Part shown: positions 2,333 through 61,880 of the stretch, piece after piece | Numbering within the stretch: position 1 is the stretch's first letter | Layout of the letters: each line of letters begins with the position of its first letter | NCBI GenBank assembly: GCA_002269645.1 | Contig: NIVC01002592.1 | Span: 19,557 to 83,556 of the forward strand | From: Macrostomum lignano | Taxonomy: Eukaryota | Direction: 5' to 3' | Length of the DNA stretch: 64,000 bases | Translations under genes and position numbers: made by a program | The notes under the pieces: model-generated | The model's input: the letters and a program-made list of their open reading frames with translations, nothing else | Told to the model about the DNA's origin: nothing | Database searches by the model: none

Positions 2333-2333
2333 T

Positions 2334-2348
2334 TGGCGACGAGGATGG
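2334..2348 (+). promoter_or_regulatory. Primer-binding site, complementary to the tRNA-Ser(GCT) 3' end
   Basis: TGGCGACGAGGATGG lies 1 nt after the LTR and is the reverse complement of the ...CCATCCTCGTCGCCA end of animal tRNA-Ser(GCT) (from memory). The gag ATG (2345) is inside it. Confidence 0.75.
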
Positions 2349-4408: not shown

Positions 4409-4457
4409 GCGAGCCAGGCACCCGCCGATACGCTACATGAACTGCCGCTGGGACTGA
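3729..4457 (+). pseudogene. Integrase C-terminal half, out of frame with gag-pro
   Basis: SEFSDFLAEQGIRHVKTSLYHPQTNGQTERLNRSL...FLSAYRSSKHSLTGKSPAELMLGRKWRT. It lacks the HHCC domain and the first two catalytic Asp. Confidence 0.9.
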
Positions 4458-16800: not shown

Positions 16801-19227
16801 CTTAATTCACTTTCACCCAGTCACTCACCCACTTAATTCACTTTCACCCAGTCACTCACCCGCTTAATTCACTTTCTTTCACCCAGCCACTCACCCACTT
16901 AATTCACTTTCACCCAGCCCAGTCACGCACCCACTTAATTCACTTTCGCCCAGCCCAGTCACTCACCCACTTAATTCACTTTCACCCAGTCACTCACCCA
17001 CTTAATTCACTTTCACCCAGCCCAGTCACTCACCCACTTAATTCACTTTCTTTCACCCAGCAACTCACCCACTTAATTCACTTTCACCTAGTCACTCACC
17101 CACTTAGTTCACTTTCACTCAGTCACTCACCCACTTAGTTCACTTTCACTCAGTCACTCACCCACTTAATTCACTTTCTTTCACCCAGTCACTCACCCAC
17201 TTAATTAACTGTCACCCATTCACTCACAAAACGTGGTAATTCTCTATCATCCAACTTTTTTATTTTTTCTCGTTTCAGTTCATGGACTTCTTCAGAAGGA
17301 TGGAAAGCAAAAACAAGTGCCTTTGTTCTTTGCACTAATGTCGGGAAAATCGAAGTACGATTACGTAGAAGTTTTGCAACACGTACTTGAGCTGACTGGA
17401 ACGGCACCCTCCAACGCTGTGCTGGATTTTGAGGAAGTCATGTGGGAGGCGCTGCATCATGCCTGCCCCAATGCTCAGCTACAAGGTTGTGCCTTCCACT
17501 TTGCACAAAGTATATTTCGCAAAGTCCAGGAGCTTGGTCTCTCCGCGTCCTACGCAGCAGACGGAGGCACAAGACTTTTCTGCAGAAAGCTGATGGCGCT
17601 AATCCACCTTCCTGCCGAACACATCTACACGGCGTTTAGCGCTCTCGCTGAAGAGGCGAACTCCGAAGCGCTGGTAGCACTCTGCCGCTACGTAGACACG
17701 ACGTGGCTCTCCAGCAGCATATGGAGTCTCAAAGAGCTTTCGGTCTACCGCAAGAGAGAGCGTACCAACAACTCCATCGAAGGATGGCACATGGCCCTCA
17801 ACAGGAGAGCGAGAAAGGGCAACCTATATCTGATGCCTTGGCAGATCTGCTTGCTCAGCAGGCTACCTTGGGGGTTCTTCAAGCCCATCAGTTGCAAACA
17901 TCGGAAAGTGCTGGTAGGCGAGTCAGACCAGTGTACAGGCGGCGTGAGGAGAAAATTAAAGCTGCCTGGCAGGAGTTTGACAACAGTGCTCGCCAGAGGG
18001 CAGACATCATGCGCCTTCTGCGCTTGTGTGCCAGCCTCACAGCCAAATTTGTTAAGTTGCCGCTTGTGCCTAACAACAATTGAACAAATTAATTAATTTT
18101 TATGACTGAACAATCGCAATGTCAATAGTATGTATTAATTAGCACCTTAAAGCATGTCCACACCATCCCCTAAGCTTTCTCGCATTGCGTCACTTTATCA
18201 AAATTCATACAGTCTTACAAAATAAACAATAGCTAGATCCGTTTGTTGAATTGCTCATTCTCAAACATTGCTCTCTGTGTTCATTTGTGTTAATAGGCCT
18301 GGAGGAGCGAGTCAGAACTCTAAATACTTTAGCTATTTGAACTAAGGAATTAGTTCTTGCAGTTTTAATCATAGTTCTGTGAAGTTCAATCGATTGCATA
18401 ATTTACATGTATGCACTCATATTCTTAAACTCTATAGTTGCTATAGCCACTGCGCCACCGTGTTGAGAGCAATGAATGCACAAGGGCGTAACTGTTCAAC
18501 TATTATTAAATCAAGTATAATAACACATTGAAACTATAGTTGTGTTTGACTGTCAGCTAATGTTTAAATAGCTGTATATATTGTTACATATTCATGCGGC
18601 TATATTGCGCAAATAAGAGCTGTACGTAGAATATTTGTAAAATATGTCAAATGAACTTATGATTGTTTTATGTAAAATGCTTCAACTGAAATAAATAATA
18701 CATGTAGCTAGCTAAGTGTAGTCATTTTTGGTAACCGCTTAAACTACAGAAAAATCTACATGTATTTACAGCTTTCATCACAATGTAAATGAGAAACTAA
18801 GTTGAGTGACAAATGTACAGTTGCACTTGCATACTCCCATACACACTCAGCATGTGCATGTATGGAGTTGAAGTGAAACCGAGATCAAGGAATTAGATTG
18901 GGGAAATCTTAGTGGGAAAGTTTTTACAGCCTCAGACTTTCCACTCTCAGCCTCGATCTCCAATCTTCAGTCTCAGCTCAAGCTCTCAGCCTCTCTCCAC
19001 TCTCAGCTTACTCTCAGCCTTTCTCCACTCTCAAGCTCTCTCCAATCTCCACTCTCAGCTCACTCTCAGCCTCTCTCCACTCTTAACCTCTCTCCAATCT
19101 CCTCTCCCATCTTCCTCTCCTCTCTCCTCTCTTTCCTTTCATCTCCTCACCTCTCTCCTCTAATCTCCCTTCCACTCCTCTCCCCTTTCTTCTCTCCTTC
19201 TCTTCTCTCTAGCTCATCTTCTCACTC

Positions 19228-22200: not shown

Positions 22201-25115
22201 AAAAAAATGTTTGACCTTTGAAAAAAAGCATGTTTTTGAAATATTTAAATATCTTCTTATTCAATTTTTTTTAATTTTATAAGAATTTCTATTTGAATAA
22301 AACAAGTTTGAAAAAATTGATTTAGTCATTCAGACAGTAGACTGAAATACCAGTTAGATAGATCTTAGAGATTTAGTATATTATGGACAAGCATTCAAGC
22401 AAGCATACAAACCTTAGAGATTTAGTATATTTAGATTATGGACAAGCATTCAAGCAAGCATACAAACCTTAGACATTTAGTATATTTAGATTTAGTATAT
22501 TTAGATATCATTGTGACTTGCCAATTCCAACCCACTTGGGGTTTTCTATCCTCACTCCATCCCTTGGTTGTTCCACACAAAACAATTCTACAAGTCTGTC
22601 TATATCATGAAAATTTCTACCATAGCATTATATGATGTCTTTTTTATTCAGTCTGCCAATAAGTAAACATGTTACAATTGTAGCATTTTCTAAACAAATG
22701 TGTTTAAATTTATATTTTTATTGTATTATTCATTTTGCTGTTCCATTATTATTAAGACTGATATCTAGCACACTACCCTTCAAGCATGCGCTACCTCTGA
22801 TGTGACACCCCTCTGGTGTGCTACCCTCAGCCCCTCTGGCATGCCACCCTCAACCCCTCTAGTGTGCCATCCCTCAGCCCCTCCAGCGCGCATGCAGTCC
22901 TTATTTAAAACATGAGAAAAACAAATTGACCAAGCATCGTTAGCAAATTTTGTATTTTGTCATTTTCTCATACTAGGCACCCTAATCTGTCTCGTGGCAA
23001 AATTTTCATAAAAATAGAACACTCATAGAATTTCATAGAATTGTTTTATATGCCTAAAGTTTATGGAGTCTATCAAGGTAACATATATTCTGTAGTCTTC
23101 CAAAATAGCCCCCATTTGTCATCTACGCATTATAAAGCAGCTAAAAGTGAGCACAGTCAAATAAAAGCTGGTTTTCCCATTGTTTCACCAGGTGCGTCAA
23201 TTCAGCCAGTATGCCACTGCAAGTGTGTCGCCATCAATCGCAAAAGTGCCCGAGGCCCGTATTAGCCAACTGGAGAATGGAATGCGCGTCGCATCTGAGA
23301 ACTGGGGCACGCCAACATGTACTGTAGGCGTATGGGTTGACGCTGGCAGTAGATTTGAGACGGACTACACCAATGGAGCTGCGCACTTCCTAGAGCACAT
23401 GGCATTCAAAGGCACGCGCAGTAGATCCCAGCAAGATATCGAGCTGGACGTTGAAAACCGCGGTGCACATCTCAATGCATACACTTCACGCGAAATGACA
23501 GTTTACTATGCGAAGTGCTTTAGCCGAGATCTACCTTGGGCTGTGGCTATTCTGGCTGATATATTGCGTAATTCTACATTTGAGGAGGCCCAAATCGAGC
23601 GCGAGCGAGGTGTCATTTTGAGGGAGATGCAAGAAGTCGAAACTAATCTGCAGGAAGTGGTATTTGACTATCTTCACGCTGTGGCATACCAGGTGTGTCC
23701 TTTTTCCAGATTGTGCGGTTGTTTCATATTATAACCAGTTTTTAAAAGAATGTGGTAATGCATCTGATATGCCTTTTCAAAAAAATTATGCAAGCGGAAG
23801 TCTACTTAGTCGAGATCAACCATATTGCTGTGTCACTATAGGACTGAAAAATCACAGCTGAACTCTCACTAATCTTGCTGCTTCTCATAGCTCTTGAGAT
23901 GAGATTATTGAGATCTCAATAATCTTGCTACTTGCAATTTCATCGAAACTATTAAAGTGATTGTCATAAGCATCTTAGAATTTTACCTATGTGATAACTA
24001 AATAGCAGTGGTTAAAACTATTCTCTAACCCATGCATCCCACAGAGTACCCCTCTATCGCGCACTATCCTCGGCCCGGTAGAAAATGTAAAATCTCTTCG
24101 TCGGCAAGATCTTCAGCAATATGTTGCCGACCACTACAGACCCCAGCGCATGGTGGTGGCCGCGGCTGGGGCCATCGACCATACGGAACTTAATGACCTG
24201 TGCCGGCGCCACTTTGGCAGTATGCCAGCTGTAGAGGCTTCACCAGGAGCAGTGGACCAGACGCCAGTTCGCTTCAGCGGCTCTAGCATTCTTGATCCTG
24301 ATGATCAGCTGCCATTCGCTCACGTTGCATTAGCTGTTGAAGGTCCCGGTTGGAGTAGTGCCGATACGGTGCCGCTGATGCTGGCCTCAGCCTACATTGG
24401 CTCATGGGATCGAGCGCAGGGTGGAGGCAGCGGCAGCGGTGGCTCCGCCGCTGCCAGGCTTGCAAAGCGAGCACGGGATACGTATGGCGGCGGTGTTCTC
24501 TCCTACCAGAGCTTTTTCACCTGCTATACCGACACCTCACTTTGGGGTATGCACGCTGTGGCCAATAAAGAATCAGTTGGTCGATTTCTAGCTGATTTTC
24601 AGGTAATTTGCACTGATTTCTGTCTAGTTTTTTCTGCTTTTTAATTTTATATAATATATGTAAGTGATTCCTCTAAATGTAAGTTAAGAGTATTGTAAAA
24701 CGAATTAGCATTTAGGAGGTTAATGCAGTTGGGAATCTAGTGGCTATTGCATTTGTGCGACTATCTAATAAAGCACCATTTTTAAATAAAGGCTGACTGG
24801 CGCCGACTGGCCAGAGGCATCGAGCCTGCCGACCTGGCTTGTACTCGTGACGCACTGCTGACCAGCCTGTACCTGCAGCTGGACGGCACCACGCCAGCCT
24901 GCGAAGAGCTCGGACGGCACGTTCTCTGCTATGGCCGGCGTGTGCCGCTGGCCGAGCTGGAGGAGCGCATCATGCGTGTCACTCCGGAGTCGCTTGCTGA
25001 AGTGGTGGGCCAGTACGTGTATGATCGCTGCCCGGCCCTGGCCGCTGTTGGACCGACTGGTGATTTGCCAGACTATGCGGTCATCAGACGGGGTATGTTT
25101 TCCGGTGACAAATAA
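13876..25115 (+). CDS. PMPCB: Mitochondrial-processing peptidase beta subunit (M16B), 481 aa; exons 13876-13938, 23192-23692, 24045-24602, 24792-25115
   Basis: Exon 1 encodes [21 protein letters not shown] (presequence-like: R/S/L-rich, no acidic residues) with a GTAAGT donor and joins in phase 0 to [10 protein letters not shown]. Motifs [13 protein letters not shown], intact zinc motif HFLEH (so beta-MPP rather than inactive core 1), [45 protein letters not shown]. All introns are GT-AG, phase 0. Exon 1 assignment is inference (~0.8). Confidence 0.92.
15398..15583 (+). pseudogene. PHD-finger exon of the MULE (premature TGA at 15485)
   Basis: [61 protein letters not shown] has C4HC3 spacing. 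It ends at AAG|GTAAGC. Not in the ORF track. Confidence 0.8.
15709..18083 (+). pseudogene. FLYWCH-MULE transposase; exons ~15709-16516 and 17279-18083, frameshift near 17825
   Basis: FLYWCH finger GY...[17 protein letters not shown]...HICH. DDE core [17 protein letters not shown]|IHG (splice A+TT), [37 protein letters not shown]-terminus continues in another frame to TGA 18083. Confidence 0.9.
16565..17225. repeat. 31-36-bp minisatellite (~20 copies) filling the transposase intron
   Basis: Unit CACCCACTTAATTCACTTTCACCCAGTCACT, with CCCAG and CTTT insertion variants; strongly G-poor on the + strand. Confidence 0.95.
18930..19310. repeat. CT-rich low-complexity tract, then (GA)n (19230-19279) and (GAGT)n microsatellites
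   Basis: Directly visible. Confidence 0.95.
22366..22510. repeat. Tandem duplication of ~50-60 bp
   Basis: TTATGGACAAGCATTCAAGCAAGCATACAAACCTTAGA occurs twice. Confidence 0.8.
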
Positions 25116-25392: not shown

Positions 25393-26585
25393 CGAGGGGT
25401 GTCCAGAAAGTTCTTTTAATCTGACAGTAATAGCTGCAAGCACAAATTTGGTGTCATATTAAAGCGGCACATCTCTTCTTTCCGATGATTTCAGTCGCGT
25501 GTATTTTGGTCATTTCATTCAAAATTTATGTATGAAAAACCATTGCAATGTTACTGATAGTCTTACAGTAAAAGTTTAAAAAAACCCGTCACGCGGCGGA
25601 GGGTTGCTTTCACAAACTTCACAAGCTCGAAATTTCATATCCTCGAAAACCATTTTAGCAGCCGACTTCACAAGCTCGAAATTTCATATCCTCGAAAACC
25701 ATTTTAGCAGCCGACTTCACAAGCTCGAAATTTCACAACCTCGAAAATGTACTGTCTATCTTAGTGTCTTAGTGTCTGTCTGTCTGTTTGTCTGTCTGAG
25801 CTTAACCCACAGTTTCGAGAATATGAAATTTCGAGCTTGTGAAGTCGGCTGCTAGAATGGTTTTCGAGGTTTTGAAATTTCGAGCTTGTGAAGTCGGCTG
25901 CTAGAATGGTTTTCGAGGTTTTGAAATTTCGAGCTTGTGAAGTCGCTTGCTAAAATTTTCGAGGATATGAAATTTCGAGCTTATGAAGTTTCGGGTTTGT
26001 GAATGAAAGGAAGTGCTTTTCGAGGTTGTGAAATTTCGAGCTTGTGAAGCGACCCCGCGGCGGAGGGGGGGCGGAGGAGAGGTGGGCGAAGGGAGAGGGG
26101 TGGGGTTAACACACTCTACACTGAGGCCCACGGAGCAGGTCCAGTGTAAAGTAGACATCATTTATCATCATCATCAACGTTTAAGGCAGCCTTCTCAACA
26201 TAGTCTCAACCTGTAGCAACACACTTTTCCCAGCACTCAAACATTCCGTGCCTTCGGCCTTCTTTCGATTGCACACTTATGATGCTGTTTATAATCACAA
26301 AAATAAAAAAACACTTGACTAATCAAAATTTCGCAAGGTTTGCGACTAAGTTATGTACTTCACCATGCATTAGTCTCTACTGTACTGAGTGTCTATTGTA
26401 AGACAATTAGTGGTATTGCAATTGGTTTTTTATACATAAATTTTTAATGAAATGACCAAAATAAATTCGACTGAATTCATTGCAAGGAAGATATGTCCCG
26501 CTTTAAAATGACACTAAAGCTGTGCTTGCAGCTGCTACTGTTTTCGCTCTGGGATTAAGTGTTAGAACTTTCCGGACACCCCTCG
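25393..26585. mobile_element. Non-autonomous mariner-type element (TA TSD, ~190-bp imperfect TIRs)
   Basis: TA|CGAGGGGTGTCCAGAAAGTTC ... GAACTTTCCGGACACCCCTCG|TA. Internal inverted arrays of TTCACAAGCTCGAAATTTC (25610-25745 vs 25815-26050). Related ends at ~32607 and ~34496. Confidence 0.85.
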
Positions 26586-29545: not shown

Positions 29546-31261
29546 GGGATAGCGACGTTTGCCAGCCGACGTTTGCCTGCGGGACGTTTGCCAGCCGACA
29601 TTTGCCAGCCGACGTTTGCCAGCCGACGTTTGCCAGTGGGACGTTTGCCAGCCGAAGTTTGCCTGCCGGACGTTTGCCAGCCGACGTTTGCCTGCGGGAC
29701 GTTTGCCAGCCGACATTTGCCAGCCGACGTTTGCCAGCCGACGTTTGCCAGCGGGACGTTTGCCAGCCGAAGTTTGCCTGCCGGACGTTTGCCTGCGGGA
29801 CGTTTTCCAGCCGACGTTTGCCTGCCGGAAGTTTGCCAGATAAAATTTGCTAGCCAATATAAAGCGAGTCAGTGAAAAATTTGATACTGAAATATTCGCA
29901 GTTTAGCGGTTTGACAAAAACCGTTTTTACTCCAACTTTTTGACGGTTATTCGCATATATACAAGTTTGCAAGCAAAATATATAAATTTTGCAGTTCACC
30001 AGTCTAACGTCCAATATCTAGTTTAACAACGATTTTGGCACAACATATCAAAAGATGAACATTGGGTTTGCCTCGTATGAAAGCAATAACAATTGTTGTG
30101 CGGAAAAGATGAAAACTTCCTATCTCCCTATGGCCTTCAAAACATTTTTCATAGATTTCGAGTGCTGCGTACTTCTACTTTAGTAGTCCTTGGCATGACT
30201 AAGCTTTGCATACGTAGTGTCTAGCGCTTGCTATTCTACTAGCTTGCTACTGGCGGCTTGTCTGGCTATTCAGCTATATAGCTTACTATAAAAACGTACC
30301 GCATTCGACTCGTCTACACTACACATGTACGTTGAGATCGCGGTTTCCTTGCTTACTTGAGTAGTAATACAACAGCATTGGAATCAATTTGCTTACTTTT
30401 AGATCTCCCAATGAACTGAGAAATATATGAGCCAGAATTACCGCTCAGCAGCTCTTTTTGTTTGCCTCATAACTTAATCGCTGGAGATTCCCGTTGTAAT
30501 CTGCGCGTCTTCTTTCGCACATCAAAAATCAAACACCTCAAACTGGGAAAAACGATACACAATTGTCAAAAGTAAACAATATTTTCACATTCAAAGAAAA
30601 TCGTTGTTAAACTGGATATTAGATGTAAATCTATATAAATTGCATAATTTATATAGATTTTGCATAAATTTCATAATTTATATATTTTGCTTTCAAACTT
30701 GTATATATGCAAATAACCGTCAAAAAGTTGGAGTAAAAACGGTTTTTGTCAAACCGCTAAACTGCGAATGTTTCAGTATCAAATTTTTCACTGACTGGCT
30801 TTATATTGGCTAGCAAATTTTGGCTGGCAAACTTCCGGCAGGCAAACGTCGGCTGGCAAACGTCGGCTGGCAAACGTCCGGCAGGCAAACGTCAGCTGGC
30901 AAATGTCGGCTGGCAAACGTCCCGCTGGCAAACGTCGGCTGGCAAACGTCGGCTGGCAAACGTCGGCTGGCAAACGTCGGCTGGCAAACGTCCCGCAGGC
31001 AAACGTCCGGCAGGCAAACTTCGGCTGGCAAACGTCCCGCTGGCAAACGTCGGCTGGCAAACGTCGGCTGGCAAATGTCGGCTGGCAAACGTCCCGCAGG
31101 CAAACGTCGGCTGGCAAACGTCCCGCAGGCAAACGTCGGCTGGCAAACGTCCCGCAGGCAAACGTCGGCTGGCAAACGTCCCGCAGGCAAACGTCGGCTG
31201 GCAAACGTCCCGCAGGCAAACGTCGGCTGGCAAACGTCCCGCAGGCAAACGTCGTAGACCC
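29546..31261. mobile_element. Foldback element with modular TIRs, Mutator-type (9-bp TSD)
   Basis: TSD ATACCCGAC (29537-29545 and 31262-31270); termini GGGATAGCGACG / CGTCGTAGACCC. Outer arrays of 14/15-bp units GACGTTTGCCAGCC (29553-29837, inverted at 30815-31254), inner ~210-bp unique TIR, ~550-bp non-coding core. Confidence 0.88.
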
Positions 31262-34693: not shown

Positions 34694-34871
34694 GACTTCT
34701 TTAACTGGCACAGTGCAGCTCGTGCAGCATCACCAACCAGTCATGTGAGTCAGCCAGTCATTCAAGAATAAATGATGGAATTCTTGTCAAGTTCATTCAC
34801 TTTTCTGCTTGTGACACTTGCCTATTCAGTCGGTGATGCTGCACGAGCTGCACTGTGCCAGTTAAAGAAGT
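34694..34871. mobile_element. Small MITE with ~40-bp TIR
   Basis: ACTTCTTTAACTGGCACAGTGCAGCTCGTGCAGCATCACC ... GGTGATGCTGCACGAGCTGCACTGTGCCAGTTAAAGAAGT. Confidence 0.8.
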
Positions 34872-36149
34872 TTGCTTGCAGAATTTTGCTTGCCGAGGTT
34901 TGCTTGCCGAACTTTGCTTGCAGAATTTTGCTTGCTGAACTTTGCTTGCCGAACTTTGCTTGCCAAACTTTGCTTGCCGAATCTTGCCTGCCGAAGTCTG
35001 CTTGCCGAAGTTTGCTTGTGGAATTTTGCTTGCCGAAGTCTGCTTGCCGAACTTTGCTTGCAGGAAATTTGCTTGCAGGAATTTTGCTTGCCGAGGTTTG
35101 CTTGCCGAAGTTTGCTTGCGGAATTTTGCTTGCCGAAGTTTGCTTGCAGAATTTTGATGTCTGCTTCCTAAAAATTCGCAATCACAATTGCAAGGTTTCC
35201 TGATTGCAGCGCATGGGCATTTTGGCGGACGGCGTCCGGCGCGGATCTAATACGGCGCGGCGCGGCGCGTACGGCGCGCGGCGATTAGTACGGCGCGGCG
35301 CGGTACTAATTAGATGCCGAGGCATTTAGGCTTGATAAGACAGTCATAGTTACTCCTGCCGTTTACCCAAAACTGCGTTAATTTTGCTTTAGGGTTTCTT
35401 TCACAGGTAAGTCATTTCACAGCGTGGCGCAGGTTGTGCAGGCGTCTGGCGTACTTAAGCCATGCGCTGCAATAGGGCAAGGTTTTAACTTGCCAAATTA
35501 TTTTCTTGTTTGCTTGCTTGTTTGATGGCTTGTGAAGTTGGTAAGTCAATTATTACATACTACAGTACAGACGATGCAGCTCTATTTGGTTCCCGGGCAG
35601 AATGAGTTCAGGGGATCAGGGAAGTGCAGCTGCTTTGCAAGTGGATTCTTATCAGCATCGACATAAACTGACTTGACACTAAGCTTTCAAACTATTAGAA
35701 ATAATTAAAGAGCTAAAAAATTGGTTCTTTACAGTTCCGCTAAAAAAAACTTTAGATAGCAAACCTTGATCAGCAAGCAAATTTCCTACAAGCAAATTTC
35801 CTGCAAGCAAAATTCGGCAGGCAAAATTCCGCAAGCAAACTTTGGCAAGCTTATGTGCAGCAAGCAAATTTCCTGCAAGCAAAATTCGGCAAGCAAACTT
35901 CGGCAAGCAAAGTTCGACAAGCAAAGCTCGGCAAGCAAACTTCGGCAAGCAAAATTCCGCAAGCAAAGCTTGGCAAGCAAACTTCGGCAAGCAAAATTCC
36001 ACAAGCAAAGTTCGGCAAGCAAACCTCGGCAAGCAAAATTCCGCAAGCAAACTTTGGCAAGCAAACTTCGGCAAGCAAACCTCGGCAAGCAAAATTCCAC
36101 AAGCAAAAGTCCCGCAAGCAAACTTCTCGCAAGCAAATTTCATAGACCC
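34870..36149. mobile_element. Second foldback-type element (TTTGCTTGC arrays in inverted orientation)
   Basis: Array of 14-bp TTTGCTTGCCGAAG-type units (34870-35155) and inverted array (35760-36140). The right end TAGACCC is the same terminus as 31255-31261; left terminus and TSD not found. Confidence 0.7.
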
Positions 36150-50969: not shown

Positions 50970-53900
50970 ATGGACAGCATCTTGGAAGAGCAAACAGAGC
51001 CCGACATGCAACAACCCAAACAGCAGGTCGCACCGCCTGAAGCCCAGGATGGGACGCAAAGAGTGCTGCGGAAATCTAGCTGGGCCGCAGGCAAGCAAAG
51101 AATCCGGGTTAGCCGACCAATATTCACGCAGTACAACTTCGATGCCCGCTACCAGTTTACGGAGCCCCAATCTGGCAATGGCATCCCGGGCGGGCAAGAG
51201 ACCGGCCTCAGCTGGGGCGGTGAAAACAGCGGTGACAGTGGTCTTGGCGCTCGACTGCGCCGCCAACTACACAACCTCCGATGCAGCGGCGATTGTGCGC
51301 TCTCCAATGCTTTCCGCCTGCTGCCCTGTCTGGCCATTATGCGGGCTTATCGACCGCGCAGCGATCTGCTGCCAGACCTTGCAGCCGGACTGACGGTCGG
51401 CATCATGAACATCCCGCAGGGCATGGCCTATGCGCTGCTTGCTGGCCTTCCACCCGTGTGCGGCCTCTATCTGGGCTTCGTGCCTCTTTTAGTTTATTTT
51501 CTGTTTGGAACTTCCCGTCAGGTGCGTCGTTAGATACAAGTTCACTACCTAAACTGATTTGATTTGATTAAAACTTTTTGCTGGAGTAAACCTTGACTGC
51601 ACTGACACCCTCACAGGTTAGCATGGGTACTTTTGCCATCGCCAGTCTCATGCTTGCTGAGTCGGTCTCCCGTTTAGCTGGTGGCGCTGGCCGCCCACCA
51701 GTTCCGGAGCTGCTGGACATCCTCGGCCCGCCACCAGCAATGTACGGCCCTGGTGATGCAAACGAGACAACCAGCGCAATGGGCAACCCGCTGGTTGGCG
51801 AGGCGAAGGCCTGGTACCGCATGCAGGTGGCTTTGAGTGTTAGCTTACTGGCCGGTGTACTGCAAATTCTGCTGGGTCTAATGCGCTTCGGTTTCATTAC
51901 ACTTTATCTAAGCACGCCTCTGGTATCCGGATTCACCACGGGCGCAGCTCTGCATGTCCTCAGCTCACAGGTAAGCATTGTGACATAAGTTATGAAAACT
52001 CATCTAAGTACTCGTAGATTTTTTGCCTACTTACCAGCAAGTCAACATTACGAATGGAATACAACAAGCTTTCTTAACTCTAAAATAATTTAGATCATGA
52101 TGTGTCGAAGTTCCAGTAATTTTAGACTTCACCCGCAAGATATTTAGTTTGCAACAAGTAGTGCATCCTGACGCGTACATTTGATCTGATAGCCTACGAC
52201 AAAGAATCTTAAAATGAGAAGTTTTATCACCAGGTGCCAGCCATCTTTGGTATCAAGGTACCTCGTCGCGAGAGCCATTTCGAGTTGGCCGTATTTTATG
52301 TCGATGTAGCCCGCCGCTTGGGCGAGACAAACCCTGTCAGCGTGCTGGTGTCGGCACTGTCTCTGGGCCTGCTTCTGTTGTTCCGATTGTTCCTCAGTGA
52401 TCGTCTGCGCCGCTGCTGTCGCTTCCCGGTCCCAGTGGAGCTTCTGCTGGTGGTTGGAGCCACCGCGATTTCGCACCTGGCTAGTCTGGATGCCAACTAT
52501 GGTCTGCGCACGGTAGGCGTCATACCTAGCGGCATTTCTGCGCCGCGTCTGCCAAGCGTTCGTCTCTGGCCAGCACTTTTCCAGGACGCAGCGCTCCTGG
52601 CCGTGGTCATGTATGTGTGCACCTACTCTGTGTGCAAGATCTACGCCGAAAAGAATAATTACCAATTGGATGCCAACCAGGAGCTTTTTGCGTACGGCCT
52701 GGTAAACATCCTGGGGCCAGTGTTCGGCTGCTACTTTTCGGCTGGGTCGCTCAGCCGTTCGCAGGTAATATAACGAAAAAATTTTGTGACTTTTTTCTAT
52801 CGGAGCTGTTTCAAAACTACCGGTAGTAAATCAAGTAAATATGTATGGCATGAGACTATTCGTTCATAAGTACCATTTGACTAATTTCTACTGCAGGTTC
52901 AAGCTGAACTGGGTGGCAGAACACAGCTGGCCAGCTTGGTGTCAGCCACGCTGATGCTATTTGTTCTACTGTTTCTGGGACCAATGTTCAGCCAGCTGCC
53001 CAATGCTGTTCTTGCCTGCATAATTGTAGTTGCGCTTAAAGGCCTTCTAATGCAGTTTACTGATGCGAAGCGCTTGTACCGCATCTCAAAGTTTGATTTC
53101 AGTATTTGGATGGTCTGCTTTGTAGGCGTTGTGGCGCTAAATGTCACTTATGGCCTGATGATCGGCTTTGCCTACAGCCTGTTGACTGTAGTTTGCCGCA
53201 CTCAGTCACCTCGGGTGTCGATTTTGGGTCGTCTACCGTTGACTGACATCTACCAAGACTACCGCTACTATCAGTGCGCAGTTCAGGTTGTTTGCTAACT
53301 TAGAAAACTTTTTATTGAGTTGGTACGGGTCACCTTGGTATGGTATAGACTTGACTCAAACGATCTGGCAGTTAATCACTCAGCCCTGAGCTAGAATTAG
53401 CAACTTTATGGAGGAGGAAGGGAGAAAAAGATTTCGAAATTCGTGCTAGACGCTGAATAAAAAAGTCCAGTAACACACCCTGCACCACCAGGTCCCAGGC
53501 GTGGTAGTGTTCCGTTTCGACGGCGCTCTGTACTTTGCCAGTGTGGAGAATTTCCGCCGCAAGCTGGCCAAGCTGACAGGCTTTGATCCCAAGCTGTCCC
53601 GCGGCGAGGATGAGAGCCTGCACCACATCGTGCTAGATTGCTCAGGAGTCAACTATGTGGACAGTGTTGGCGCGCGGTTTTTGCAATCCCTGGCCGCAGA
53701 ATACAAATTGGCGGGAGTTTGCATCTTGTTCGCCTGCTGCCCGCACCAGGTTTTTGCAATCCCTGGCCGCAGAATACAAATTGGCGGGAGTTTGCATCTT
53801 GTTCGCCTGCTGCCCGCACCAGGTTTTTGCAATCCCTGGCCGCAGAATACAAATTGGCGGGAGTTTGCATCTTGTTCGCCTGCTGCCCGCACCAGGTTTT

Positions 53901-54435
53901 TGCAATCCCTGGCCGCAGAATACAAATTGGCGGGAGTTTGCATCTTGTTCGCCTGCTGCCCGCACCAGGTTTTTGCAATCCCTGGCCGCAGAATACAAAT
54001 TGGCGGGAGTTTGCATCTTGTTCGCCTGCTGCCCGCACCAGGTTTTTGCAATCCCTGGCCGCAGAATACAAATTGGCGGGAGTTTGCATCTTGTTCGCCT
54101 GCTGCCCGCACCAGTTCCGCCGGATGCTGGAGCGCAGCGACTTCCCCGACCGTTCTGCCTGCGTCTACATCTCCGTCCACGATGCTGTAGTGGGCGCGCT
54201 GGCCGACTACCCGGAGGTGCGCCGATGGGTCATCTCCGACGTGCGCAGCCGGAATAACAGCGTCGTGGAGCCTGGAGCCTCAGCAGTTGTGACTGGCATT
54301 CATAGCGCAGCGGATTCCAGTGCTGACGCTTTACGGAGGGAAACAGTGACAGGAGTCCAGCGTTTTGTCCCGGCCGGTGACGAGGAAGCGATGTCTTTGA
54401 TAAGGAACAATGGAACCAGTGAAATTTCCTGCTGA
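50970..54435 (+). CDS. SLC26/SulP anion transporter with STAS domain; exons 50970-51521, 51617-51970, 52234-52764, 52897-53286, 53492-53749, 54115-54435 (801 aa if the repeat is spliced out)
   Basis: DLAAGLTVGIMNIPQGMAYALLAGLPPVCGLY, FGTSRQ|VSMGTFA, LVSGFTTGAA, DANQELFAYG, GSLSRSQ|VQAELGGRTQLA, VPGVVVFRFDGALYFAS, HHIVLDCSGVNYVDSVG. The first four introns are GT-AG, phase 0. The last junction is inferred. Paralog identity not assignable. Confidence 0.93.
53677..54114 (+). repeat. Six identical 73-bp tandem copies inside the STAS exon
   Basis: Units start at 53677, 53750, 53823, 53896, 53969 and 54042; each begins GT and ends CAG. Confidence 0.97.
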
Positions 54436-56006
54436 AAGAAAACTTTGCGGCCGATATCACTGGCAGTTGATATAATAGTTTTAAGTAACTCTTCCCAATG
54501 GCCTTCTAAGTCCCTATGTTATTCTACTCTAATTTATCTCTGCTATAATTGGTATAATTATTGGTATAATTGGTATCACTGATTATTTTGCACGCACTTT
54601 GTGTTTTACAGTCACTGAACCAGTGCATCAGTCTACGAGACACTATGCAATTTCAAAGCATGTAAGAGCTCATGAGATAATTTACGCTGATAGTTATCTC
54701 TGAATTAATCGGAACACAGTTCGAACTTGTTCTGAGATGAATCTCAGTTAATTCCATCCTAAACTACCGGTAATAATAATCGATAAAGATAAGAGCTTTT
54801 AATATGTGACATTCTTATAGTGTACTACAAGCATTACTGGCTAAGTGCAACATCATTTCACTCTCTCAGTCTTTGTGGCACTTCTGTATGAAAGCAGTAA
54901 TATTCATTGTGCTCATTGTGTCACTCTATGCGCTCATAATTCAACGCTTCGAAACAATTTTTGAACTAATACAACATTCATGAGACAATGTTTCTGTGAG
55001 TATGGTTTGCTTCTAGACAATAAATAATTTTAACAACTCGTGAAAAAATCATTGTCTAACTCTAGAATCATAAATAGACACAATCAACCATTATATTCGA
55101 TATATTCATTGGTATGCGAGCATACTACGTCATACTAACTACACAGCATCATATTAGTCATAGTAGCTCATGACTAACTAACTGTGACTAGTTCACTCTG
55201 AATTTATCAAATCAAATTCATAACCGCAGTCACAATACTGCAGTCAATTTTCAAGAGGCCGTAAGGCGCTGCACAAGATAGGAGTGTCCAAAGTTCAGGC
55301 AAATTAGAAACACTGAGCCGCATGAAGTGTCCTTTTATTTCAGTAGCTACTGCAGTCAGGTCTTTCACATTTCTTCTCTCCCCTCCGTGCCCTGCCCAGT
55401 CAGTGTAACTCTAGCAAAAGTCAGCGAGGAGAAGGATTGTGCTGCCGTGAGTGTACAATGAAGACCTGCGCACTCGTACAGTATGCACTCGAGTCAACTT
55501 TGCTCCGTTCCCCTGTCGTCTGTTTGCCAAAGCTTTAAAAAGACCAGAGCACTCCGATACAAGAAACCGCTGCGCCTTTTGAAATCAACCTTATTTGTTT
55601 TATTCGCAAGCTCGGCTTAACAGCAGGTCAGTTGGAGCTAGTTTTTTCATTTAATCAAACAAAATTTTATAAACAACTTACTTGCCTCTCATAAAAATGG
55701 AATTTTTACTTTTGAAATCCTAGACTGATGTTAATCATAAAGAACCAAAATTTACGCAGCAGAAAATGGAGTTGTATCCATCTAACTTGAGAAAGTTTCT
55801 GAAATGTGGTTATTAGTTCTCCAAAAACCTTACTTCTGCCATCATCACTACGCTCCGTTTTCTATCTTTAATCAATCGTGATTGCAATGCAGCTCAATAG
55901 TCGGGTTTTTAATGCTTAAATGTATATTGCCACCGAGTGCGCTCAAAATCGACTATAGACTGTAGAGGTAAAACTTTCCCGTCACATGCTCTCTCATGTT
56001 CTAATA

Positions 56007-56182: not shown

Positions 56183-56407
56183 TAACTTTGTAACTTTGGC
56201 GGCTCATTTGGGCTTACTCGCATCATTGAATTAATCCAAGATGTTTGCCGAAGTAATGGAGCTTTTGTCTATGGTACATGTAGCACAGAAGCATTTAATT
56301 TGGTCCAAAAACATCAATTTGGTCCTTATATTCTATAGGTTCTTTTTGTATGCAGCAAAACATAGAATTTTTTGTGTCTCGCCAACAGCTTTGGTGACTG
56401 CATCGTG

Positions 56408-59106
56408 ATGTCAGCATCGCTTACTCTTTTCGGCGTGGCCGCCATCGCTGGCGCAGTCGTTTGGTTGCTGCGACGCGTCTTCTTTGGCAGCGGCAGCCGG
56501 ACGCCGAGCCCGTTCCTGCCGCCATCGCAGCTTCCGGCGCGGTCGGCAGTGGAAACGCGCCAGTCTGTTCGGGACGAATCGCTGAAGCGGGGCTTCTCCC
56601 CGGCCCGGGTGCCTGCGAATCTGGATGCCATTGTGATCGGATCCGGTATTGGTGGCCTGTCAGCGGCCGCCCTCCTAGCCCGGGCCGGCCGTCGGGTGCT
56701 GGTGCTGGAGCAGCACGACGTGGCCGGCGGCTGCTGCCACACGTTTTGGGAGCGCGGCTACGAGTTTGACGTTGGCATTCACTACATTGGAGAGATGGCT
56801 CCCGGTTCAGACATGCGAGCTCTGGTCGACCAGGTGAGTGGCTGTGTATGCGAGAGTTGTGTTCAAAGGTGCCAATCTTACTAATTATGTACGAGTATAA
56901 ATAACCATTGTCAGGAGGGTTGTGGGTACCCTGGCGCAGCGACAGCAGTCAGCAGTTATCGAGGAACAGCGACATCCTCGTACATTCTGCCCATTTAGTA
57001 CATAAGTACAAGTACATTAGGACATTAGTATACAAGCTTGCTGTACGCAGGTATGCAATCATACGAGCTATTGATGTCGTTGATATACGAGCGTACCTGA
57101 AATTGACAATTTTCTTCTTCTTCTCACTGTTAATTTGACGGGTATGCAGTGCGCAGTTTTGAGTGATTTTTTCTTAGCTCTAGCAAGTCAAGATGCATTT
57201 TTCCCCAGAACCCAGACGGACTGTCTTCTCTTTTTCCACAGTTGACAGCGACTTGAGTTCAAGCGATCAATTAGAAATATGAGGGGATTCTTGTCGGAAA
57301 TGTCGCTGCATTTTGAGCATAGCAACTCGTACCGCTCGCACCACCGCGCAGATAACGGACGGCCAGCTAGACTGGGCCCCGCTGGACCCCGACTGCTACG
57401 ACGCCATCATGATCGGTGACGACGAGACCAAGCGAGTCTACAATGTCAGCGCTGACCGGAGAAAGTTCATCGGCCTCTTGTGCGAGAAATTTCCCAATGA
57501 TGTGGACGCAATAAAAAAATTCTTCACTTTCGCAGACTCGTTACGCAAGGGCTCGGAACCTTACTGGGGTCTGAAGTTCCTGCCGCTAACATTGAGCAGG
57601 CTGCTCGCCAGGTCCGGCCTACTGAAGTACTTCTTCCCCATCTTCAGGTTTGTTGTACTTTTATATTGCTTTTTTTAATCCCTTGTTTACGAGTTCTTTC
57701 TCCGAACGAATGTGAATGGTAAGAAAAAGTCTAATACTTGTTTCTTTAGCATCAATTTTTTTTTAATTCTGACTGATGCAGTAGATTTGATTTTACCTCA
57801 TGAATGTTGTGGCATCTAGTCACACCCCACTGTTTTATGGTTCTGTTTCTTTCAACTAATACCTAGGAAACTTTCGTCTTCGCTGGAAGTTGTGGTAAGG
57901 ATGTTAAAGTAATATTGCAGCCATGGAGCTTGACCGCTTATCTCCCTCTATCCCTGAATTTGCAGGCACCTAGACGAAAGCATCGATTCGCACCTGTATC
58001 AGCTGACTGACAACCAGGAACTTCGCGCAGTTCTGAGCTACTGCTATGGCGACTACGGAACCCAGCCCAGCAAGGCCTCGGTTGTCATGCAGGCCTGGCT
58101 ATTCAATCATTTCCAAGGTGCCGGTGCATTCTACCCTGTAGGCGGTGCCAGCGAGATCGCCTACACCATCTTGCCAGTCATTCGCCGCACAGGTGGCGAG
58201 GTCCTCGTTCGGGCGCGCGTCACCCAGTTGCTGGGCAACCCAAGCACCGGTGCTATCGAGGGCGTCGTTGTCAACGGCAAATCGGAGGTCCGTGCACCGC
58301 TGGTGATATCGGCAGTCGGGCTAAACAACACGGCAGCCATCATGCCGCCTGGCATTTCCGCGGGCCGCCTTCCCGGACTTCTGAATGACATGCCGATTGG
58401 AGTGGCCGCCATGTCGGTGTTTGTCGGCCTCAAGCTGCCCACCGATCGGCCAGTCGAGTCGCTCGGCCTGCGCCGTCAAAATGTGTGGCGATTCACTGAT
58501 CCCAACCTGGACAAGTCCGTGTCCGAGTACCTGGCCTTGGACCCGCAGGAGGCCGCTGCCTCAGATGCCCCGCTGATGTTTGTGTCATTTCCCTCGCTGA
58601 AGGACCCGACGTGGGCGAAGCGGGCGGCTCTGGACCGTCTCACCTGTGCCCTGGTGACGCTCACCAACTGGGACTGGTTCGCTGACTGGTCCGACGCGAG
58701 AGTGAAGCACCGCGGTGCTGACTATGAGGGTCTGAAAGGCGCCATCGGTCGCCGCCTGTGGGAGCAGACTAAGGCCATCTTCCCGCAGCTGGCTGATCTG
58801 GAGGTTGAGGCCTTCGAGGTTGGCTCTCCCGTGACCAATAACTTCTACATCGGCTCGCGCCGCGGCGAAATCTACGGCCTTGACCATGGACTCGCCCGCA
58901 CCTCTGCCGATGGCTGCGCCCGCCTCCGCCCCGACATTGGCGTGCCCGGTCTCCTGTGCTCCGGCCAAGACGTTGCCAGCTGCGGCTTTGTCGGCGGCCT
59001 TGTGGGCGGCCTGCTGTGCGCCTCGGATGCTTTGGGCAGAAACCTCTTCTTCGACCTGGCCGCTCAGGTGCGGCAGGAGAGGCGAAGGGCCAAGCAGATT
59101 GATTAA
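56408..59106 (+). CDS. RETSAT: All-trans-retinol 13,14-reductase (retinol saturase) homolog, 620 aa; exons 56408-56833, 57352-57647, 57966-59106
   Basis: N-terminal anchor; DAIVIGSGIGGL (Rossmann), VLEQHDVAGGCCHTF, GYEFDVGIHYIG, DQ|ITDGQLDW, SYCYGDYG, GAFYPVGGASEIA, PLMFVSFPSLKDP, GSPVTNNFYI..RGEIYGLDH, GQDV. GT-AG introns, phases 0 and 2 consistent. Confidence 0.94.
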
Positions 59107-60726: not shown

Positions 60727-60777
60727 CTGAGGCTGGCTCGTACATTGCGCCCTGAGGCTGGCTCGTACATTGCGCCC
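60727..60777. repeat. 25-bp tandem duplication upstream of the aquaporin
   Basis: CTGAGGCTGGCTCGTACATTGCGCC occurs twice. Confidence 0.85.
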
Positions 60778-60833: not shown

Positions 60834-61880
60834 ATGTCTGCCGAAGATCGAAGACGCTTGACCTGGTCGCGGGTCGAGTCGCGCCTGGTGCTGCGGCACC
60901 GGCCATCGCAGCTGTTCCTGTCGGAGCTGATCGGCACAGTAGTGCTGGTCATTATTGTGGACTTGGGCTGCGGCTTGGCCACCATCACCCAGCGCGGTGG
61001 CATCAAGAATTTCGTGCCCGCGGTGGGCATCGGCAACGGACTCGGTGCCATGACGGGGATCATGGTCAGCCTGCGCCTCTCCGGTGGTCACATCAATCCT
61101 GCGGTCTCATTCGCCATGTTTACCCTGCGAAAGATGAGCTTTAAACACCTGCTGCTGTACCAGTGGGCGCAATACCTTGGCGGGTTCCTGGGCGCCATGG
61201 TCGTCAATCTGCTCTACTTTCAGATCTTCAACAATCTGAACGGCGGCCAGCTGGTGGCCTTTGGCCCGAACGGCACAGCGGGAACCTTCTTTACTTTGCC
61301 GAATCCGGCCATCAACAACGGAGTGGCCTTCGCCGACCAGGTGGTGGGCACCTCCCTGCTGCTGCTGGCCGTCAGAGCCATCACGGATCCCAACAACCTG
61401 AACACGCCACCGGCTCTGCAGCCTCTGCTCATCGGGCTAGTGATCATGGGCCTCATCATCTCCGAGGTGATCGTGTCCGGCACTTGTCTGAATCCGGCGC
61501 GCGACTTCGCACCGCGCCTGGCAACTCTGGCTCTCGGCTACGGGCCGGAGGTGCTCAGCTCGCGCTCCTTCTACTTCTTGGTGCCGCTGGTGGGCCCGTA
61601 CGTCGGGGCCGTTCTGGGCGCCTGGGTCTACGAGCTGGCCTACGCCAAGCCGTTGCAGCTGCTGGTTGAGCAGGAGGCTGCGGCCGCCCTCAATGAGGAT
61701 CACGCGAATGACGACGAGGACTTTCCCACTGCCAGGGTGCAGCAGCCTCACCTCCAGCAGCGTACGCCGATATTGGCCTCTGCGACAAAGCGTCGACCAT
61801 GCGACGATGAGGACAGCGTCAAGGCGGAGTCGCTGCGGCATGCGGCAACTGCATCGCTGGAGGAGAAGGCTGAGTGCTAG
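60834..61880 (+). CDS. Aquaglyceroporin (MIP family, GLP branch), 348 aa, intronless CDS
   Basis: SELIGT, SGGHINPAVSF, AQYLGGFLGA, TAGTFFTLP, DQVVGT and LNPARDFAPRL; the Asp after the second NPA marks the GLP branch. First ATG at 60834. Confidence 0.93.
   Translation: MSAEDRRRLTWSRVESRLVLRHRPSQLFLSELIGTVVLVIIVDLGCGLATITQRGGIKNFVPAVGIGNGLGAMTGIMVSLRLSGGHINPAVSFAMFTLRKMSFKHLLLYQWAQYLGGFLGAMVVNLLYFQIFNNLNGGQLVAFGPNGTAGTFFTLPNPAINNGVAFADQVVGTSLLLLAVRAITDPNNLNTPPALQPLLIGLVIMGLIISEVIVSGTCLNPARDFAPRLATLALGYGPEVLSSRSFYFLVPLVGPYVGAVLGAWVYELAYAKPLQLLVEQEAAAALNEDHANDDEDFPTARVQQPHLQQRTPILASATKRRPCDDEDSVKAESLRHAATASLEEKAEC

Follow-up and report, generated by a model that had tools for sequence, protein, structure and literature searches.

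The stretch of DNA analysed here (the window, 64,000 nucleotides) lies on contig NIVC01002592.1 of assembly Mlig_3_7 (GCA_002269645.1) of Macrostomum lignano, a neopolyploid with three subgenomes. It contains a gene for an SLC26/prestin-like anion transporter, whose last exon, coding for the STAS domain, carries six identical 73-bp units in tandem. Homeologous genes with one and with three units are present in the same assembly. The extra units displace the reading frame, and each junction between them forms an AG/GT at which an intron can be drawn, as is done in the public annotation.

The SLC26 gene and the array in its last exon

The annotated coordinates of the gene on the contig (L004:137-3602) correspond to window positions 50970-54435, and the annotated product has 801 residues. 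Downstream of it, the single-exon aquaporin open reading frame (ORF) at 60834-61880 is also an exact product on NIVC01002592.1. The transporter carries PF00916 (Sulfate_transp) and PF01740, with the membrane domain ahead of a STAS domain at the C-terminus, which is the architecture of the SLC26/SulP family; the Pfam match to STAS has E=3.5e-20. Once the array is collapsed to a single unit, the 801-aa model aligns with prestin (PDB 7v73) with E=1e-149 and free of gaps at every exon junction and at the array site. Structures of prestin, SLC26A6, pendrin and SLC26A9 match the collapsed protein with E=1e-93 to 1e-149. A homolog search performed with exons 4-5 gave six distant matches, with no M. 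lignano protein among them; the cluster representative is the window's own protein, PAA56665.1. Exact look-ups of the exon-1 ORF and of an ORF from the array gave no record. No second SLC26 copy was found by blastn in the 64-kb window. The coordinates of the gene and of the array are collected in Table 1.

Table 1. Features of the SLC26 gene and of its tandem array, in window positions (CDS, coding sequence; TRF, Tandem Repeats Finder; SNP, single-nucleotide polymorphism; a slash marks a splice site or a junction between units)
Feature	Position	Strand	Evidence or remark
SLC26/prestin-like anion transporter, CDS span	50970..54435	+	PAA56665.1, BOX15_Mlig020782g1, 801 aa
Exon 1	50970..51521	+	gene model, prestin alignment, GenBank protein
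Intron 1, 95 nt, phase 0	51522..51616	+	CAG/GTGCGT...CACAG/GT
Exon 2	51617..51970	+	gene model, prestin alignment, GenBank protein
Intron 2, 263 nt, phase 0	51971..52233	+	CAG/GTAAGC...CACCAG/GT
Exon 3	52234..52764	+	gene model, prestin alignment, GenBank protein
Intron 3, 132 nt, phase 0	52765..52896	+	CAG/GTAATA...CTGCAG/GT
Exon 4	52897..53286	+	gene model, prestin alignment, GenBank protein
Intron 4, 205 nt	53287..53491	+	weak donor CAG/GTTGTT, acceptor CACCACCAG/GT
Exon 5 through the end of the first (native) unit	53492..53749	+	
Diagnostic SNP	53659	+	G in both array-bearing copies, A in the 1-copy homeolog
Tandem array in the STAS (last) exon, six identical units of 73 bp	53677..54114	+	TRF, sequence, prestin alignment
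Units 1-6	53677-53749, 53750-53822, 53823-53895, 53896-53968, 53969-54041, 54042-54114	+	
Diagnostic SNP inside the unit	53697	+	C in array copies, A in the 1-copy homeolog (Ala/Glu)
Candidate 365-nt intron (five extra units)	53750..54114	+	GT 53750-53751, AG 54113-54114; implied by the GenBank CDS
Alternative 242-nt intron	53750..53991	+	donor CAG/GTTTTT, internal acceptor CCGCAG/AAT; reproduces the 41-aa insert of A0A1I8GMK6
Remainder of exon 5, FRRMLERSDF... to the stop	54115..54435	+	TGA 54433-54435
Diagnostic SNP	54144	+	C in array copies, T in the 1-copy homeolog
Premature stop of the unspliced, frameshifted frame	54188..54190	+	ORF 53501..54190

The four introns are all of phase 0 and lie between CAG and GT; every exon-exon junction reads Gln/Val, and each intron is flanked by a CAGGT direct repeat. 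These flanks reflect either a strong proto-splice-site preference in M. lignano or a trace of the origin of the introns. The donor of intron 4 had been described as weak in an earlier, sequence-only reading of this stretch, and it is. Nevertheless, this intron must be spliced, since its removal is needed to join the conserved ...CAVQ/VPGV... and to make any STAS domain. The junction is gap-free against prestin and is used in all three GenBank proteins. Thus, the gene has in intron 4 its own precedent for a donor of the GTT type.

TRF reports one array at 53676-54114, with a period of 73, 6.0 copies, 100% matches and 0 indels. G53676, which stands immediately before the array proper, is the same base as that with which each unit closes, and this 1-bp microhomology ends a GGCGCGCG run. 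Six perfect tandem 73-mers cannot have arisen by chance. The unit codes for (R)FLQSLAAEYKLAGVCILFACCPHQ of the STAS domain, aligned with (K)TLKEIVKEYREIGVQVYLAGCNAS of prestin, and is therefore native exon sequence rather than an inserted element. No further copies of the unit or of the introns were found in the window by blastn, and an introner or transposon origin of the array was discarded. No special DNA or RNA structure that could assist expansion or looping-out was found for the unit or for the array, their z-scores (+1.1 and +1.9) being no better than those of shuffled sequences.

Every internal junction reads CACCAG/GTTTTT and continues as CACCAG/GTTTTTGC. There is no AGGT within the unit, and AG/GT exists only where two units meet. 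It had been proposed that the duplication junction created this motif, which is correct, and that the original exon had no AGGT, which is not: the single-copy exon has its sole native AGGT at window position 54215 (exon position 359 in the 1-copy homeolog), outside the duplicated segment.

Without splicing, the 365 extra nucleotides shift the frame and an 841-aa product results, in which the end of the STAS domain (FRRMLERSDF...VYISVHDAV, aligned to prestin residues ~665-715) is missing and the last ~106 residues are lost. The remainder of exon 5 is in frame only after removal of five units or of two, and in the latter case an in-frame insert of 73 aa is left. Excision of five units at 53750-54114 rejoins CAC CAG/TTC CGC and gives ...CILFACCPHQFRRMLERSDF..., with no gap against the STAS domain of prestin (7v73); the collapsed mRNA junction is ...CCGCACCAG/TTCCGCCGG..., and an identical mRNA is obtained if 53677-54041 is excised instead. 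The ancestral coding sequence is restored in this way, with a translation that equals PAA56665.1 exactly and is collinear with PAA77027.1, the product of the 1-copy gene. All six frames of the unit are free of stop codons. All these properties (the six identical copies, the CAG/GTTTTT junctions, the absence of stops, the frameshift ending at 54190, the restored protein and the 73-aa insert) had been advanced from the letters alone, and repeat detection, translation and structural alignment bear them out.

The array can be described in two ways on these data. On the one hand, it has all the sequence properties of a frameshifting allele of an exonic variable number tandem repeat: identical units placed head to tail, copy numbers of 1, 3 and 6, and a unit length not divisible by 3. 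On the other hand, 53750-54114 begins with GT and ends with AG, as does the segment between any two junctions. Besides, each junction juxtaposes a candidate 3' and a candidate 5' splice site, and the loss of one unit recreates CACCAG/GTTTTT, which is what recursive splicing demands of a sequence.

Homeologs and the history of the array

The other copies of the locus were located through near-identical aquaporin proteins on two contigs, on which the gene order is the same, with SLC26 upstream. The SLC26 gene has 1 unit on NIVC01000769.1 (PAA77027.1, 801 aa), 3 perfect units on NIVC01002593.1 (L003:2672-2891; PAA56656.1, 797 aa) and 6 perfect units in the window (PAA56665.1, 801 aa). The sequence-only reading had suggested looking for intermediate copy numbers, of which the 3-unit gene is one, and it had taken the array as a derived tandem duplication of native exon. 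The 1-unit homeolog and the gap-free alignment of the collapsed form with prestin lead to the same conclusion, the single unit being the ancestral state. As the tandem-duplication route of intron gain supposes, formerly exonic sequence has been duplicated and the intronless state is kept, here in the 1-unit homeolog.

A three-way alignment of the SLC26 genes with collapsed arrays contains 26 substitutions and two indels. Outside 53126-54336 the 3-copy gene follows the 1-copy sequence and is ~1% different from the window. Inside this interval (846 collapsed nt) it has 0 differences from the window, and it differs from the 1-copy gene at 53432, 53659, 53697 and 54144. At a divergence of 1%, ~8 differences are expected over 846 nt (P ~2e-4). 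The array-bearing tract being identical in the 3- and 6-copy genes, the array has a single origin and is now found on two backgrounds. The mosaic of SNPs in the 3-copy gene points to gene conversion or recombination between homeologs, or else to a chimeric consensus that may have been formed during assembly.

The second possibility leads to the question of whether the arrays are real. Mlig_3_7 was obtained from PacBio reads by Canu assembly and Pilon polishing. The subgenomes S, L1 and L2 of the DV1 line diverge by ~1.4-2.4%, and chimeric scaffolds make up 36% of the assembly length. The true locus might then have fewer copies, or only one, and both the arrays and the mosaic might come from homeolog reads mixed during the correction or consensus steps of Canu. 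Such an origin would agree with continuous-long-read PacBio data from an organism of three subgenomes, with the mosaic itself, and with the UniRef model A0A1I8GMK6, whose exons 1-4 are of the 1-copy type and whose exon 5 contains the array and is of the type seen in the window (the first 609 residues of the model equal the protein of the 1-copy gene). However, an array of 439 bp is spanned by single long reads, and two contigs have perfect units with the same boundaries and different copy numbers. Moreover, a second, independent gene model needs at least 4 copies, and exact multiples of 73 bp are not normally created by consensus errors. For these reasons we hold an assembly artefact to be improbable.

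The two array-bearing genes differ by three units (219 nt). Their 2 and 5 extra units (146 and 365 nt) both shift the frame by +2, so that nothing suggests selection for translatable copy numbers, and the idea that the repeats are an in-frame expansion of the protein was rejected, since neither 3 nor 6 copies keep the frame. The coding differences among the three copies (10 nonsynonymous and 6 synonymous) correspond to a dN/dS of ~0.5, which is not significantly below 1 and comes from too few changes to separate constraint from drift.

The diagnostic SNPs at 53659, 53697 and 54144 span 121 nt of collapsed mRNA. By means of them, junction reads can be assigned to an array-bearing or to the 1-copy haplotype. 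The 6-copy gene is told apart from the 3-copy gene by sites 54337, 54345, 54371 and 54391.

Some other differences among the three genes were observed. In the 3-copy homeolog a 1-nt insertion lies shortly ahead of the stop (L003 3190-3200, ~window 54418) and changes the last five residues from SEISC to M, and because of it PAA56656.1 is four residues shorter than the other products (797 vs 801 aa). Seven substitutions that distinguish the window from both homeologs cluster in 38 nt of intron 3 (52772-52809), just downstream of its donor. On the 3' side of the SLC26 stop, the 1-copy homeolog has insertions of ~150 bp and ~3.2 kb with respect to the window (L002 452-4217 vs 54477-54941), and these may explain why the window gene belongs to a transcript cluster of a different name (Mlig020782 vs Mlig013434 g1/g2).

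Annotation, splice signals and the reading of the array

The array-collapsed translations of the 6-copy and 3-copy genes are exactly the GenBank proteins PAA56665.1 and PAA56656.1, and an 801-aa product from a span of 3466 nt requires the removal of 365 nt at the array. The deposited annotation thus already treats the extra units as introns, of 365 nt and 146 nt. This coincidence favours a genuine nascent intron, as does the fact that the canonical GT-AG falls in exactly the phase that restores the protein. In such a case the spliceosome would remove the extra units (146/365 nt) and at least 10% of the transcripts would encode the normal 801-aa protein, the removal being either a single event or a recursive process with 73 nt lost per round, as each excision regenerates CAG/GTTTTT. 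All in all, and with both modes of removal taken together, we think that this explanation is rather unlikely, for reasons given in the following.

The annotation of Mlig_3_7 is purely transcript-based, from StringTie/TACO on STAR alignments and a de novo transcriptome. On the 3- and 6-copy loci, a 1-copy transcript that covers the unit and both flanks can be aligned only with a gap of 146 or 365 nt, which can always be placed at a GT-AG, and for this reason the annotation is no proof of splicing: as evidence for an intron, it is fully confounded by cross-mapping between homeologs, which are 98-99% identical. A pipeline that retains multi-mapping reads would draw the array 'intron' regardless of actual splicing. 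In addition, transcripts overlapping repeat annotations were dropped before submission. An isoform that retains the array overlaps the TRF annotation and is removed by this filter, so its absence from GenBank is uninformative.

Different pipelines draw different introns at this locus. Translation of 53492-53749 joined to 53992-54435 gives the C-terminal part of A0A1I8GMK6 (842 aa), in which the spliced junction is CACCAG/AATACAAATT (CACCAG/AATACAAA). A second UniRef-only M. lignano model, of 612 aa, reads through the weak donor of intron 4 (...VQVVC*). The first of these models raises the possibility that the array is partly translated, by splicing from the junction donor to CCGCAG/AAT with 242 nt out, to give an in-frame insert of 41 aa in the STAS domain. 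An intron at 53750-53991 reproduces the 842-aa model exactly, the internal acceptor has a T-rich upstream tract, and the isoform cannot derive from cross-mapped 1-copy transcripts. The model is, though, probably an ab initio one, from a predictor that takes any GT-AG by which the frame is kept; part of the insert is junk read out of frame, placed inside a compact domain, and the same weak donor is needed. We therefore regard partial translation as very improbable.

The signals of the junction were compared with 8 donors and 9 acceptors of the window and with published motif counts for M. lignano. The junction donor lacks GT[G/A]AG, the top donor motif of this species (122,399 of 187,627 cis-splice regions). 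It matches CAG/GTAAGT at 6 of 9 positions and its duplex with U1 has -5.6 kcal/mol; leaving aside the donor of intron 4, the other seven local donors have -7.5 to -13.3 kcal/mol. Of the exonic GT decoys in the SLC26 gene, about 9% form a U1 duplex that is as good or better, among them the unused CAG/GT sites at 51027 and 51827. No YTNAY branch-site motif is found within 40 nt upstream of the junction acceptor, and 7 of the 9 local acceptors have one. The GC content of the unit (0.548) is that of an exon (0.50-0.60) and not of an intron (0.32-0.42 in the four introns of the gene). A use of the unit as a spliced-leader (SL) trans-splice acceptor was rejected, since its CACCAG does not fit the published [T/C]TNCAG motif.

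On this basis we think, with a confidence only somewhat above an even balance, that the array is a very young, copy-number-variable, frameshifting exonic minisatellite, which is buffered by the intact homeolog and undergoes little or no excision. This preference is based on the rate of tandem duplication, the threefold redundancy of the gene, the exon-like composition, the missing branch site and the decoy-like donor. As to the first of these, 15% of the M. lignano genome consists of simple or tandem repeats and its assembly is highly redundant; the window alone has 38 TRF arrays, which occupy 8.1% of its sequence. Tandem duplication is an everyday mutation in this genome.

The events may have been as follows. 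A 73-bp piece of the STAS-coding last exon would have been tandemly duplicated between breakpoints that share one G beside the GGCGCGCG run, and the array would then have expanded and contracted by slippage or unequal exchange. Its tract would later have moved between homeologs by gene conversion or recombination, unless it was mixed during assembly. From unspliced mRNA a protein without the last ~106 residues of the STAS domain would be made. The sequence-only reading had considered degradation by nonsense-mediated decay (NMD), a caveat that was imprecise: no exon junction follows the premature stop, which falls within the last exon, and under the standard exon-junction model NMD would not be triggered. 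Consequently, a truncated protein is to be expected from unspliced mRNA rather than decay. The array allele would probably be a loss-of-function or strongly hypomorphic one, tolerated thanks to the intact 1-copy homeolog. As the junction happens to read CAG/GT, a canonical gap that restores the protein could be drawn, and the public annotation would have drawn it. In our judgement this gap comes mainly from 1-copy transcripts mapped onto the array loci, and true excision would be absent or minor, the low efficiency being an estimate. We infer both this efficiency and the mechanism of expansion and transfer.

Several observations weigh against the minisatellite and in favour of splicing. The donor of intron 4, which must be used if a STAS domain is to be made, has the same values as the junction donor in the comparison with the consensus and in the U1 duplex. 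For the junction acceptor (...CTGCTGCCCGCACCAG/) the pyrimidine fraction at -22..-3 is 0.70, local values being 0.40-0.75, and its ending CACCAG/ recurs in introns 2 and 4. The YTNAY motif is also missing from intron 4 and from another intron of the window. Exonic CAG precedes 8 of the 8 window donors, and the junction donor too. Apart from the array, the ORF of the 6-copy gene is intact, with no sign of decay, and the array tract persists on two homeologs. Furthermore, it has been published that duplication-born introns can be spliced immediately in cells. In short, the weakest real intron of the gene has splice sites that are no better than these, yet the body of the 'intron' is exon-like.

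Against splicing there are, besides the confounded annotation and the poor signals already mentioned, two more general points. Six donors and acceptors compete, and most partial excisions (of 1, 3 or 4 units) still leave the mRNA out of frame. The perfect identity of the units means, moreover, that there has been no time for selection to improve the signals. The sequence-only reading had seen here a nascent intron. The splice that it proposed is indeed the one in the public annotation; spliceosomal removal is not demonstrated by this, and the signals are mixed. That the array is an intron caught at birth, with a series of 0, 146 and 365 nt across three homeologs and an AG/GT that comes from the junction and not from the content of the unit, is in our opinion a tentative and somewhat doubtful proposal.

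The locus is of interest under either explanation. Newborn introns of known mutational origin are very rare, and for the tandem-duplication route there are a handful of cases and one re-enactment. Here the ancestral (1) and derived (3, 6) states are found side by side in one inbred line. The locus is also unusually testable, with diagnostic SNPs within ~120 nt of the junction, abundant public RNA-seq and established transgenesis. If the extra units are spliced, it is a natural, length-polymorphic case of intron gain by tandem duplication, in which the array-bearing copies are kept functional. If they are not, it is a warning that transcript-based annotation of polyploid or duplicated genomes makes exonic duplications into canonical-looking introns and reports frameshifted genes as intact proteins, and it would illustrate how a gene begins to be lost soon after the whole genome has been duplicated.

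Neighbouring features and comparison with known systems

Other features of the window were recorded. A retroelement ORF, GC-rich and with a weak aspartyl-protease match, a MULE transposase ORF and a Peptidase_M16 gene lie at 2333-4457, 15709-18096 and 23191-25115, respectively; the last is like a mitochondrial processing peptidase and has the donors CAG/GTGTGT and CAG/GTAATT. Three foldback-like structures, at 25616-26049, 29553-31254 and 34867-36141, are made of tandem arrays (repeat length 49 bp or 14 bp) set opposite inverted copies of themselves, with arms of up to 267 nt, 86-98% complementarity and distances of 58-1400 nt. A multi-exon gene at 56400-59106 (+), absent from the annotated genes of the contig, has an FAD/NAD-binding N-terminus (GSGIGGLSAA...); its large exon has no Pfam match, and the gene looks phytoene-desaturase or retinol-saturase-like. 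Its second intron was modelled with a GTT-type donor, CAG/GTTTGT at 57648, other in-phase upstream GTs being possible. The aquaporin start codon at 60834 is preceded, ~60 bp upstream, by a perfect 25-bp tandem duplication (2.0 copies, 60727-60777). Among the aquaporin paralogs of M. lignano, one is single-exon and another has an odd frameshifted model.

A literature search found no paper linking Macrostomum with intron gain at the SLC26 locus. The closest model for an intron born in this way is that of Hellsten et al. (2011, PMC3265369), who re-enacted intron birth by duplicating an AGGT-containing exon with better signals, upon which 6-16% of the mRNA was spliced. It is the only experimental re-enactment of a duplication-born intron. 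As in the array, the duplication is exonic and head-to-tail, the intron is bounded by a GT and an AG from different copies, scarless excision restores the coding sequence, and the intronless state survives in paralogs. In that model, however, AGGT is inside the duplicated segment, whereas the unit of the array has none and its AG/GT is made by the junction. The array differs also in having 2 or 5 extra copies instead of 1, a donor far from the consensus, a possible recursion and an excision that is only putative.

The intron of a potato gene for RNA-dependent RNA polymerase (RdRp) described by Ma, Lan & Niu (2016, PMC4974935) shares with the array a tandem duplication that is recent and confined to one lineage. 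The potato duplication extends across an intron-exon boundary, so that branch site, polypyrimidine tract and 3' splice site were inherited, and splicing was observed; the array is wholly exon-derived and known from DNA. The authors of the potato study consider that the tandem-duplication model is diverse in the sources of splice signals (PMC4974935).

Recursion is for the array only a formal possibility. Recursive splicing at zero-length exons, or ratchet points, is known from Drosophila Ubx and other long introns, in which AG/GT regenerates the 5' splice site after each upstream excision. Unlike the junctions of the array, these ratchet points belong to introns of great length, and their sites are strong matches to the consensus.

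Artefacts of template switching or mapping must also be compared with the array. In both, perfect direct repeats flank the deleted segment, and cDNAs or alignments that lack units look like introns. Roy and Irimia are said to have treated, in 2008, apparent splicing as an artefact at direct repeats. Such artefacts are usually without a canonical GT-AG, whereas the array always offers one, so the usual filter is of no help. Reverse-transcriptase template switching at direct repeats mimics splicing (Houseley & Tollervey 2010, PMC2923612; SQANTI, PMC5848618).

In spirit, the nearest parallel to the array is given by the internal tandem repeats, specific to individual paralogs, of human segmental duplications. 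Internal repeats in recent human paralogs reportedly created introns through cryptic splice sites, according to work by Zhuo et al. in PNAS in 2007. The array differs from the human repeats in the organism, in the perfect identity of its frameshifting units and in being carried by homeologs of a neopolyploid. In common with those described by De Grassi & Ciccarelli (2009, PMC2812944), it is exonic, its copy number varies between near-identical paralogs, and there are repeat-free transcripts. For the human genes, these authors pointed out that a mismatch between genome and transcript can mean structural polymorphism and not splicing (PMC2812944).

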